From Pseudomonas aeruginosa PAO1 (GTDB lineage: Bacteria > Pseudomonadota > Gammaproteobacteria > Pseudomonadales > Pseudomonadaceae): 64,000 nucleotides of DNA. The DNA is taken from the NCBI RefSeq assembly GCF_000006765.1, contig NC_002516.2; one strand, written 5' to 3'. The position numbers and the translations under genes are program-made. The notes beneath the pieces were generated by a model. The model saw only the letters and a program-made list of their open reading frames with translations, did not search any database and had not been told where the DNA came from. How positions within the stretch are numbered: position 1 is the stretch's first letter; each line of letters begins with the position of its first letter. Of this stretch, positions 133 to 3,673 are shown piece after piece.

Positions 133-500
133 ATGAGCGCTCTCATCAAGGAACGTCCCAGCGCCGATGCCGTCCTGGCCAAGGCCGTCCTGGCCGCGCG
201 CGAGCAATTGGGGTGACGCAGCTCGAACTGGCCGGCATCGTCGGCGTCGATCGCAGCGCCATCAGCCGCTGGAAGACCCAGGGCTTGCGGGTGGACAGCA
301 AGACCGGCGAGCTGGCTCTGCTGCTGGTGCGAGTCTATCGCGCACTGTATGCCCTGTTCGGCGGGCAGCAGGAGGACATGCGCCACTTCCTGCGCACTCC
401 CAACCATCACCTGGCGGGCGAGCCGCTGGCACTGATGGGACAGGTGCAGGGCCTGGTTCATGTGCTGGAATACCTCGATGCGATCCGCGGCAAGGTCTGA
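133..500 (+). pseudogene. natR: Xre/MbcA-ParS-type antitoxin (NatR, PA1029), split by an apparent 1-bp deletion at ~213
   Basis: Strong RBS and ATG133 give MSALIKERPSADAVLAKAVLAAREQLG, then TGA at 214-216. The HTH continues in another frame from 213 (TQLELAGIVGVDRSAISRWK...LEYLDAIRGKV). The span 133-500 is 368 bp, one base short of a 122-aa gene. It may be an assembly error rather than a true pseudogene. Confidence 0.85.
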
Positions 501-1531: not shown

Positions 1532-1614
1532 GAGGCTTCGGCGAAAATTTGTGCACAAATGGAAAGCAGCTTGTCAAGGGTTGAGAGCGTTAGGCTCTAA
1601 ACGCTTGATTTTTC
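1532..1614. ncRNA. Possible small RNA (recalled PAO1 annotation P8/PA1030.1); boundaries uncertain
   Basis: Hairpin AGCGTT-N8-AACGCT followed by a T-run at ~1586-1613. The sRNA assignment is recalled, not derivable from the sequence. Confidence 0.25.
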
Positions 1615-1639
1615 ATGTTTGAAACGTAACTTATTGAAA
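1598..1639 (-). promoter_or_regulatory. Two IHF-type binding sites
   Basis: Minus strand AATCAAGCGTTTA (1598-1610) is a perfect WATCAANNNNTTR match. TTTCAATAAGTTA (1627-1639) has 1 mismatch. Both lie in an AT-rich tract. Confidence 0.6.
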
Positions 1640-1724
1640 AATAACGATAAAAATAGTTGGTGAAAAAATCGTCAATCTGTCCCATAGCCCCACTCCATCG
1701 GGGGTTCGGCAGTTTTTTAGGGGC

Positions 1725-1759
1725 TTTTCCACTGGGTTATCCACAGGATCTGTGGATTT
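1725..1759. promoter_or_regulatory. Three DnaA boxes in DARS-like arrangement
   Basis: TTTTCCACT (1725-33), 3-bp spacer, perfect TTATCCACA (1737-45), 5-bp spacer, inverted TGTGGATTT (1751-59). Confidence 0.7.
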
Positions 1760-2043
1760 CCCAAGCGCTTGCTCGACAGCACATCGCACGCTCCAAGGCA
1801 AGCCCTGTAGCCGCGACAAAAATGCCGTGGAAGCAGAAATGTCCTGGCGGCGAAGGGCGCAGGGCGATGGCTTCCGTTACGGAAGTATCTGAGATGTCCT
1901 GCGCATGGGGTACGCACAGCTCGGAAGCGGAGTGCTCGTTCGGCGCGGCGCTATTCGCTCGACGGTCTTTTCCCAAGAACCTAGAATCCGCTGCACGCGC
2001 GCCTGCCAGGCGGGTGTTGCGTCGTTTTCCGCTGGAGTGCCCC

Positions 2044-3519
2044 ATGCCCGTCGATCTACCGAACCTGTTGCTTGGCCTGCTGGCTGCCGCGATTCCCCTG
2101 GCCGGCCTGGCATGGCAGCTACAGAGAAGGGCCAGCCTGGCGGAGCGCGAGATAGCCTTGCTCGGCGAGCGACTGGCGACCGCGCAACTGGCCCAGGACG
2201 GGCTGAATGCGCAGTTGGAGACCAGCAGGGAGGCTTACCAGCAACTCGGCGAGCGCCATGCCAGGTTCGCCGGTGAGGTCGCCGCGCTGCGTCGGGAAGC
2301 CGAGTTGATGGGGGAGGAGCGGCAACGGGCGTCCCAGGCGGAGGCACGTTGGGCCAGCGAGCGCCAGGGCCGGGAAGAGGAATTGCGTCGCCTGGCTTCC
2401 GAACGGGCTGCGCTGGCTGCGGAACTGCGCGAGCAGCAGGAAAGCCACCAGCAGCGCCTGACCGACCTGCAGTCGGCCCGCGACGAGTTGCGGGCACAGT
2501 TCGCCGAACTGGCGGGAAAGATCTTCGACGAACGCGAACAGCGTTTCGCCGAAACCAGTCAGCAGCGCCTGGGGCAGATGCTCGATCCGCTCAAGGAGCG
2601 CATCCAGGCGTTCGAGAAGCGGGTGGAGGAAAGCTACCAGCAGGAAGCGCGCGAGCGTTTCTCCCTGAGCAAGGAACTGGAGCGTCTGCAGCAGCTCAAC
2701 CTGCGCCTGGGCGAGGAAGCGACCAACCTGACCCGCGCGCTCAAGGGCCAGAAGACCCAGGGCAACTGGGGCGAACTGGTGCTGGAGCGGGTGCTCGAGC
2801 ATGCGGGCCTGGAAAAAGGCCGGGAATACGAGACCCAGGTCAGCCTGAAGGGCGCCGAGGGCGAACGCTTCCAGCCGGACGTGCTGATCCGCCTGCCCGG
2901 CGACAAGCAGGTGGTGGTGGATGCCAAGGTCAGTCTCACGGCCTACCAGCAGTACATCGCCGCTGACGACGATCTGCTGCGCCAGCAGGCGCTGAAGCAG
3001 CACGTAACGTCGTTGCGCAACCATGTGAAAGGCCTCTCCGGCAAGGACTATCGACGCCTGGAAGGGTTGCACAGCCTCGACTTCGTCCTGCTGTTCATGC
3101 CGATCGAGGCGGCTTTTTCGACGGCCCTGCAGGCCGAGCCGAACCTGTTCCAGGACGCCTTCGCGCAGAATATCGTGATCGTCAGCCCGACCACCCTGCT
3201 GGCCACCCTGCGGGTAATCGACAGCCTCTGGCGCCAGGAGCGGCAGAACCAGAATGCGCGGGAAATCGCCGAACGTGCCGGTTCGCTGTATGACAAGTTC
3301 GTGCTCTTCGTCCAGGACCTCGATGAGGTCGGTTCGCGCCTGCAGCAACTGGACAAGGCCTATGCCGCGGCGCGCAACAAGCTCACCGAGGGACGTGGCA
3401 ACCTGATCAGTCGCAGCGAGCAACTCAAGCTGCTCGGTGCCCGCGCCAGCAAGAGCCTGCCGACGGACTGGCTGGACCGGGCGCTGGTGGCGCCCGTGGA
3501 AGAGGCCGGAGAGGAGTGA
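2044..3519 (+). CDS. rmuC: DNA recombination protein RmuC (PA1031)
   Basis: GGAG RBS before ATG2044. N-terminal TM helix, coiled coil, then RmuC motifs QGNWGELVLERVLE, PDVLIRLP, VVDAKVSL and DFVLLFMPIE. Confidence 0.92.
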   Translation: MPVDLPNLLLGLLAAAIPLAGLAWQLQRRASLAEREIALLGERLATAQLAQDGLNAQLETSREAYQQLGERHARFAGEVAALRREAELMGEERQRASQAEARWASERQGREEELRRLASERAALAAELREQQESHQQRLTDLQSARDELRAQFAELAGKIFDEREQRFAETSQQRLGQMLDPLKERIQAFEKRVEESYQQEARERFSLSKELERLQQLNLRLGEEATNLTRALKGQKTQGNWGELVLERVLEHAGLEKGREYETQVSLKGAEGERFQPDVLIRLPGDKQVVVDAKVSLTAYQQYIAADDDLLRQQALKQHVTSLRNHVKGLSGKDYRRLEGLHSLDFVLLFMPIEAAFSTALQAEPNLFQDAFAQNIVIVSPTTLLATLRVIDSLWRQERQNQNAREIAERAGSLYDKFVLFVQDLDEVGSRLQQLDKAYAAARNKLTEGRGNLISRSEQLKLLGARASKSLPTDWLDRALVAPVEEAGEE

Positions 3520-3576: not shown

Positions 3577-3606
3577 ATAAAAGAAGGGCGTCCGGAAGGA
3601 CGCCCT
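3577..3606 (-). terminator. Intrinsic terminator downstream of quiP
   Basis: GGGCGTCC-GGAA-GGACGCCC stem (3586-3605) with a U-rich tail on the minus strand. A second hairpin lies at 3644-3668. Confidence 0.7.
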
Positions 3607-3673
3607 GAAGATGATCATGGAGTAAGTCGGCTGTTCAGAGCCACGGCGCGGAGGAAAGTTCCGCGCCGTCCGT

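Follow-up and report, generated by a model that had tools for sequence, protein, structure and literature searches.

The stretch analyzed here (the window) comprises 64,000 nt of the Pseudomonas aeruginosa PAO1 chromosome and carries, between a RES-domain toxin gene and rmuC, a 653-bp intergenic region (1391-2043), in which a putative DnaA-reactivating sequence (DARS) was studied. An initial annotation, made from the sequence, had proposed a DARS2-like or possibly datA-like element at this place, upstream of rmuC and far from oriC. Window coordinates are taken as PAO1 positions minus 1,116,000, because the position of the small RNA (sRNA) P8 and the distances to the neighbouring genes given by Livny et al. 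2006 (PMC1524904) fit the window. The trio of DnaA boxes described below occupies PAO1 positions 1,117,725-759; with the locus at ~1.1177 Mb and oriC1/oriC2 beside dnaA and mnmG, the distance from oriC is as had been proposed. The AT-rich tract reported near the boxes is likewise present (31-35 % GC over 1580-1700 vs 66 % window-wide). The features of the element and its surroundings are the following, offsets within the regulatory arm (+51, +85, +167 etc.) being counted from box III:

1547-1776, minus strand: whole conserved module of ~230 bp, running from box I via box III into the regulatory arm, as delimited by an alignment of 79 Pseudomonas loci
[quoted passage not shown]
1737-1745, minus strand: DnaA box II, TGTGGATAA (TTATCCACA on the plus strand), perfect consensus
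1725-1733, minus strand: DnaA box III, AGTGGAAAA, oriented as box II and 3 bp from it, 2 mismatches
1659-1673: Fis-like dyad GGTGAAAAAATCGTC, offsets +51 to +65
1627-1639, minus strand: IHF-like site TTTCAATAAGTTA, offset +85, 1 mismatch to WATCAANNNNTTR
1598-1610, minus strand: second match to the IHF consensus, AATCAAGCGTTTA, offset +114, without mismatch and coinciding with the 3' stem of the P8 terminator
1553-1567, minus strand: Fis consensus match GCTTTCCATTTGTGC, offset +157, 1 mismatch, overlapping the distal DnaA box
1549-1557: distal DnaA box TTGTGCACA / TGTGCACAA, offset +167, palindromic core of ATTTGTGCACAAAT (1547-1560)
1759-1774: Pseudomonas-specific block TCCCAAGCGCTTGCTC just outside box I, containing the 10-bp palindrome CAAGCGCTTG (1762-1771)
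1532-1609, plus strand: sRNA P8 (Rfam RF01682), full-length match (108.5 bits vs a threshold of 60), covering the distal box and not the DnaA trio
213-500: Xre-type antitoxin gene
635-1390: RES-domain toxin gene
2044-3519, plus strand: rmuC (Pfam RmuC PF02646, E = 1.4e-108), context outside the element

On the minus strand, positions 1725-1759 read AAATCCACA-GATCC-TGTGGATAA-CCC-AGTGGAAAA, and both direct reading and a scripted scan reproduced the boxes, their orientation and the 5- and 3-bp spacers of the initial annotation exactly. The resulting 9-5-9-3-9 geometry, with box I inverted at 5 bp from box II and box III following box II in tandem after 3 bp, occurs a single time within the whole window. 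A lone perfect DnaA box is by itself unremarkable for the window; for a trio with at most 2, 0 and at most 2 mismatches, the chance expectation (calculated analytically from the base composition of the window) amounts to 2.7e-8 in 64 kb and 2.6e-6 in 6.26 Mb. Five of the 14 relaxed DnaA-box matches of the window cluster within 1549-1745. Geometry and orientation are identical to those of both DARS cores of Escherichia coli MG1655, i.e., DARS1 at 813107-813141 (TTATCCACT-ATTCC-TGTGGATAA-CCA-TGTGTATTA), which the initial annotation had quoted without error, and DARS2 at 2969135-2969169 (TTATTCACC-TTTTC-TGTGGATAG-AGT-TGTGAAGAA). Two further traits of a DARS core are found: the perfect and invariant box II as a high-affinity nucleating box, and a non-coding chromosomal position outside oriC.

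Conservation was followed in the RmuC loci of 80 Pseudomonas species (~9-kb pieces, mostly from draft contigs). The trio is present upstream of rmuC and on the same strand in 78 of them, the remaining two being contig ends at which the DNA upstream of the gene is shorter than 550 nt; the trio was found on a P. syringae contig, too. All 78 informative species retain the 9-5-9-3-9 arrangement, in agreement with the expectation that boxes, spacing and synteny with rmuC should hold in other pseudomonads. Box II is invariant in all 79 loci, box I reads CAATCCACA or AAATCCACA in each of the 78 informative species and always lies 5 bp from box II, and box III appears elsewhere as AGTGGACAA, AGTGGAGAA or CGTGGATAA. 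The letters of the spacers vary (GAAGC in most species, GAACC, GATCC; CTC, GTC, CCC, CTT) at constant spacer lengths, a signature of protein-binding sites and not of RNA or coding sequence.

Several blocks besides the trio are held in the same register: GGTGAAAAA begins exactly 78 bp before box II in 79/79 loci, TAAnTnnnTGA 110 bp before it in 75/79 and TTGTGCACA 188 bp before it in 77/79, and GCRCTTGC is located at +28 or +29 from box II in 74/79 loci. The module is nearly free of indels (at most a 1-bp shift in few loci), and the DNA between and outside these blocks is unalignable between species groups. Its position relative to genes is less regular. The distance from rmuC to the core ranges from 110 to 520 bp, the neighbour on the left side of the module varies by species group, and in the fluorescens group an open reading frame (ORF) of ~107 aa without Pfam match, which is absent from P. 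aeruginosa, is inserted between module and rmuC (e.g., L014 3616-3936, plus strand, and ~38 further loci). The element keeps its place upstream of rmuC in the 78 species without being bound to the promoter of that gene. The RmuC-based genome scan and protein search yielded close Pseudomonas relatives only.

In the regulatory arm, the site at +51 (GACGATTTTTTCACC in the window) has 2 mismatches to the Fis consensus, as do its counterparts in 75/79 Pseudomonas loci relative to GNNYANNNNNTRNNC. It is embedded in a wider dyad, TTGGTGA-N5-TCGTCAA (1657-1675), the outer pair of which co-varies among loci, and the region doubles as a one-mismatch DnaA box (TTTTTCACC). The Fis match at +157 is free of mismatches in 38 and has 1 mismatch in 30 of the 79 loci. 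Possible counterparts of the Fis sites that DARS2 needs for activation, of which one overlaps distal low-affinity DnaA boxes, would be the site with 2 mismatches (+51) and the one with 0-1 mismatches in 68/79 loci (+157), the Fis consensus itself being weak. The IHF-like site keeps its distance of +85 in 77/79 loci; judged by the consensus, it would be the counterpart of the IHF-binding site that DARS2 has beyond box III in a fixed position. Both IHF consensus matches listed by the initial annotation are real, but the perfect one (1598-1610) belongs to the P8 terminator and is perfect in just ~10 of the 79 loci. The family register is held by the one-mismatch site at 1627-1639, since its offset matches the IHF position found across metagenomes (see below). 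The 14-bp palindrome at 1547-1560 is also real, though situated inside P8, and conservation of its core TTGTGCACA does not depend on the hairpin of P8. At the opposite end of the module, the palindrome CAAGCGCTTG is perfect and begins 2 bp past box I. A conserved pentamer, TGTCA (window 1577-1581; TGACA at +143 when read from box I towards box III), was additionally observed in the stretch that separates the distal box from the IHF-like site.

Relatives beyond the genus were sought by scanning metagenome contigs for TCCAC-N6-TGTGGATAA-N4-GTG, which retrieved 119 loci (L083-L201) ranging in GC content from 31 to 72 %. At the positions left unconstrained by the search pattern, box I reads TTATCCACA in 54 of 121 matches and deviates from it by at most 1 mismatch in 96. 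The 180-nt arms past box III cannot be aligned with one another (ungapped identity 29 % in the median; 105 clusters at 60 %). Enrichment was tested with 105 arms from the box III side vs 101 sequences from the control side, allowing at most 1 mismatch. The Fis consensus is found at +48-53 in 72/105 arms vs 13/101 control-side sequences (with an exact match at +51 on the box III side in 27/101 loci), the IHF consensus at +81-89 in 53/105 vs 0/101, and TGTGNAWAA, which occurs at +154-182 with a mode of 167-170, is present at +150-171 in 61/105 vs 1/101. The enrichment of Fis, IHF and distal-box motifs is hence confined to the box III side. A perfect IHF consensus at +82-87, always in the one orientation also seen in the window, is present in 33/119 loci. 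The Pseudomonas block outside box I (GCRCTTGC / CAAGCGCTTG) was not seen in the metagenomic relatives.

Among the neighbours of the metagenomic cores are a radical-SAM gene (11 loci), priA (10), xseA (8), uvrB (7, including the exact E. coli DARS1), rmuC (4) and rppH (1), and none of the 119 loci has dnaA, dnaN, rpmH or mnmG as neighbour. Two of the priA-linked loci belong to a Chromatiaceae metagenome-assembled genome and a relative of Beggiatoa. Box I faces priA, the start of which is ~85-120 bp from the core where checked (L135, L146, L155), and box III faces xseA, uvrB and mutH; some neighbours are convergent. That cores recur next to genes of replication and repair points to either a common DnaA-linked regulation of these genes or a preference for such intergenic regions. 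In three metagenomic loci (L112 1624-1664, L148 6530-6570, L162 5362-5402), the core pattern is present on both strands with a 10-bp offset, forming an inverted pair with a third box on each side. A uvrB-linked locus of DARS1 type (L197 1220-1254), the UvrB of which is 87 % identical to that of E. coli, has a perfect IHF consensus at +86, unlike E. coli DARS1; the lineage leading to the latter may have lost its IHF arm.

Taken together, the alignments establish a non-coding, non-origin, genus-wide module, in which a DARS core is combined with an arm of Fis-like, IHF-like and DnaA sites at fixed positions and which is part of a broad family of the same architecture. Core geometry, presence in 78/80 species and fixed positions of the IHF, Fis and distal-box motifs support, at the level of sequence, the DARS2-like reading put forward initially. 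Window 1547-1776 is therewith probably a DARS-type (DARS2-like) DnaA-reactivating element, for which release of ADP is predicted from the architecture.

In E. coli, release of ADP from DnaA at DARS2 depends on the core, the IHF-binding sites (IBS) 1-2 and the Fis-binding sites (FBS) 2-3, and ATP-DnaA on the boxes overlapping FBS2-3 displaces Fis (PMC4245941; PMC11724364). ADP release at DARS has been linked to the head-to-head pair of boxes separated by 5 bp (PMC6868365). By analogy, ADP-DnaA would bind to the perfect box II of the Pseudomonas element and recruit further protomers, head-to-head at box I and head-to-tail at box III. IHF would bend the arm such that the distal DnaA/Fis site could fold back beside box III of the core, the distal site and box III both being ~80 bp away from the middle of the IHF site. 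The head-to-head pair would then release ADP, and apo-DnaA would depart and rebind ATP, increasing ATP-DnaA before initiation at oriC. One may speculate that ATP-DnaA on the distal box competes with Fis, providing negative feedback as at E. coli DARS2. Equally speculative is a modulation of complex assembly by transcription of P8, which passes through the distal box and ends at a distance of ~15 bp from the IHF-like site; eviction of IHF from E. coli datA by tRNA read-through (PMC10950094) may serve as a parallel.

Some observations weigh against a DARS-type function. Box I lacks TT at positions 1-2 throughout, and a single copy is seen in the 64-kb window. Measured against consensus sequences derived from E. 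coli, the IHF-like site (+85) and the Fis-like site (+51) have 2 mismatches each in the majority of Pseudomonas species. The offsets deviate by ~10 bp (about one helical turn) from those of E. coli DARS2 and the orientation of box V is opposite, which leaves convergence or an older module common to both as alternatives to homology with DARS2. The frequent location of DARS-type cores beside replication and repair genes (priA, xseA, uvrB, rmuC) would fit a transcriptional role as well. Finally, E. coli devoid of all four extrinsic DnaA regulators is reported to grow almost normally (PMC11331064); any phenotype may accordingly be subtle.

The main rival explanation, which appears unlikely, is a promoter region controlled by DnaA, IHF and Fis, i.e., an operator that couples transcription of rmuC, of the small ORF of the fluorescens group or of P8 to the DnaA status without any role in the nucleotide cycle. 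Apart from the metagenomic neighbourhoods mentioned above, it is favoured by the position of E. coli DARS1 and DARS2 themselves in the promoter regions of uvrB and mutH, which are known DnaA-binding sites (PMC5835720), and by the distal box inside P8. However, side and distance to the neighbouring gene are inconstant, given the variable spacing to rmuC (110-520 bp), the intervening ORF and the mixed orientation; the sigma-70 promoter scan produced no match within or beside the core, its sole match being at 1959-1987; and a fixed nucleoprotein geometry over 230 bp with a head-to-head pair exceeds the needs of an operator. Moreover, the operator role is compatible with, and not exclusive of, a DARS role.

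Somewhat less probable still is a datA-like or titration site, at which DnaA and IHF would stimulate hydrolysis of DnaA-bound ATP or DnaA would be sequestered, making the element a negative regulator of initiation. An IHF site between DnaA boxes and a bend joining distant boxes are also the logic of datA (PMC5742627), and five box-like sites are assembled within ~200 bp. The datA region of MG1655 is, however, laid out differently (TTATCCACA, ~55 bp, IBS, ~85 bp, TTATTCACA-3 bp-TGTGGATGA); the 9-5-9-3-9 trio is absent from it as well as from E. coli oriC, and conversely the datA-type succession of boxes 7 and 2, IBS and boxes 3 and 4 is not found in the Pseudomonas element. The head-to-head pair at 5 bp belongs with ADP release by DARS (PMC6868365) and Fis sites belong to DARS2, not to datA. 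The datA-like alternative offered by the initial annotation is less probable than the DARS-type reading.

It is very unlikely that the conservation merely stems from the P8 gene (promoter, body and terminator) or from a site for an unrelated transcription factor. P8 is a detected transcript overlapping 1532-1609: in PAO1, it was mapped to 1,117,532-1,117,609, and a Northern band of ~130 nt was obtained from exponential- as well as stationary-phase cells (Livny et al. 2006, PMC1524904). The palindrome at 1547-1560 corresponds to its first hairpin and the perfect IHF match to the stem of its terminator (1585-1606 plus T run), the end of which is just short of the IHF-like site; besides, the palindrome CAAGCGCTTG and a dyad TTGGTGA-N5-TCACCAA could serve dimeric regulators. 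As a plus-strand RNA gene, P8 thus explains the hairpin and terminator features. Among 13 sequences scanned, however, the Rfam P8 model matches solely the window and P. paraeruginosa (L003), i.e., the aeruginosa lineage, from which it follows that the conservation of the module is not that of the sRNA; no families besides P8 were found in the Rfam scan of 12 related loci. The flanks of the P8 hairpin are not conserved whereas TTGTGCACA is, and the most conserved stretch (1725-1776) is located 115 bp past the P8 terminator. P8 does not cover the DnaA trio and fails to explain the genus-wide conservation of 1625-1776. The family-wide fixed positions of Fis, IHF and distal-box sites suggest that part of the conservation behind the P8 prediction is owed to a constraint on the DNA, namely on the distal DnaA box, and not on an RNA.

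Least likely of these explanations is an origin of replication, either secondary (oriC2) or a relic such as that of an integrated plasmid, despite the low GC content (31-35 %) beside the boxes and the two autonomously replicating origins reported for P. aeruginosa (bioRxiv 10.1101/2025.08.05.668638), as oriC1 and oriC2 are situated at rpmH-dnaA and upstream of mnmG and not at 1.1177 Mb, rep gene and iterons are missing, the AT-rich tract is filled by the conserved Fis-like and IHF-like sites, origin marker genes adjoin 0/119 family members, and E. coli oriC is devoid of the trio.

Narrower candidates were rejected as well. Identity with oriC2 is ruled out by the published position of the latter upstream of mnmG, ~5 kb from oriC1. 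A small protein gene (62-aa minus-strand ORF 1631-1819; long TTG ORF from 1657) is rejected as no reading frame is open through the module across the 79 species. In case of a structured RNA over 1620-1780, nothing but the inverted DnaA boxes, which are invariant, and the Fis-like dyad gives rise to apparent helices, and RNAalifold detects practically no covariation in the module (term just -0.49). A Dam/SeqA role of the GATC in the spacer between boxes I and II is discarded in view of the varying spacer letters (mostly GAAGC) and the position of Pseudomonas outside the Dam clade (bioRxiv 10.1101/2025.08.05.668638). For a sigma-54 or sigma-70 promoter in the block beside box I, no convincing match was discernible by eye, P. 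aeruginosa deviates by 1 bp in the spacing, and the sigma-70 scan points elsewhere.

DARS-based recycling of DnaA nucleotides has been demonstrated functionally in E. coli alone. According to reviews, DARS1/DARS2-like sequences are conserved in many proteobacteria (PMC10380432), and conservation of the sites for IHF and Fis has been published for Enterobacterales, Vibrio, Shewanella and Aeromonas (PMC4245941). In the literature searched, no paper on a DARS-type element in Pseudomonas was found, consistent with the initial statement that none had been characterised in P. aeruginosa; an earlier listing among the DARS candidates from other species in Fujimitsu et al. 2009 is possible. The part likeliest to be new is the family-wide register of Fis, IHF and distal box. 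These fixed positions provide geometric constraints for models of ADP release triggered by IHF and Fis, and the locus offers a sharply delimited, genus-conserved candidate of ~230 bp for how an organism without Dam and SeqA times initiation. As a regulator of Pseudomonas replication acting away from the origin, the element is a strong candidate.

More tentatively, and with rather less confidence than for the DARS-type function itself, the Pseudomonas element may be viewed as representative of an old gammaproteobacterial module (DARS core, Fis at +51, IHF at +85, distal DnaA box at ~+167) that moved among intergenic regions (rmuC, priA, xseA, uvrB, mutH and others). Recharging of DnaA in cis under the control of IHF and Fis would then be general, also in organisms without Dam/SeqA, the enterobacterial DARS2 would represent a derived form, and synthesis of P8 would gate the element in P. 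aeruginosa.

Some observations concern the surroundings of the element. The Xre-type antitoxin gene (window 133-500) seems to be split, with an ATG-initiated ORF from 133 ending at ~214 and the Pfam-matching ORF beginning with GTG at 213; the latter spans just positions 25-63 of the 63-position Xre-like helix-turn-helix model. This may reflect a frameshift or merely a short annotated start. On the far side of rmuC, an 847-aa ORF is convergent with it, and between the two a sub-threshold Rfam match to Burkholderia ncS025 (window 3577-3644, minus strand; 24.7 bits vs a threshold of 46) coincides with a GC-rich hairpin and a T run, most likely an ordinary terminator. Among the sampled loci, a contig titled "Enterobacterales bacterium" (L012, JBKYMN010000001.1) encodes an RmuC 81 % identical to the query and carries a Pseudomonas-type module; its taxonomic label is probably wrong.

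The element may further be compared with known systems. As in P. aeruginosa oriC1 (at rpmH-dnaA) and oriC2 (upstream of mnmG, ~5 kb apart from the former; bioRxiv 10.1101/2025.08.05.668638), DnaA boxes and an IHF site are found near AT-rich DNA; however, the origins possess origin-type arrays with a DNA-unwinding element, whereas the Pseudomonas element is more than 1 Mb away from them, is lacking such an array and marker genes, and carries a DARS-type trio instead. With datA, it shares a cluster of DnaA boxes outside oriC together with an IHF site, which is functional in datA and putative in Pseudomonas, but datA has neither the head-to-head pair at 5 bp nor the tandem box at 3 bp, does not require Fis and has the opposite biochemical outcome. 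DARS1 of E. coli, located between bioD and uvrB and grouped with the DARS of ColE1, has nearly the same core and shares TCC-TGTGGATAA-CC letter for letter with the P. aeruginosa core, box II being perfect in both. DARS1 works without IHF or Fis from a regulatory region of ~50 bp (PMC5742627), and no IHF consensus match with at most 1 mismatch was detected in the 260 bp past its box III.

The closest counterpart in overall design is E. coli DARS2 (mutH-ygdT/rppH, 2.97 Mb), although the flanks of the two are unalignable and neither synteny nor alignable homology with the enterobacterial mutH region is apparent, the neighbour being rmuC. Box II has one mismatch in DARS2 and is perfect in Pseudomonas. 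In the MG1655 DARS2 arm, IHF matches are located at +58/+74 (vs +85 in Pseudomonas), a Fis match at +158 and box V, in opposite orientation to the distal box of Pseudomonas (+167), at +176; the best-conserved Fis-like site of Pseudomonas (+51) is positioned between core and IHF site, where E. coli DARS2 has the dispensable FBS1. The order of the parts is nevertheless the same in both arms, with a distal DnaA box ~170 bp out that is overlapped or flanked by Fis, and both elements are intergenic, far from oriC and adjacent to a DNA repair gene.

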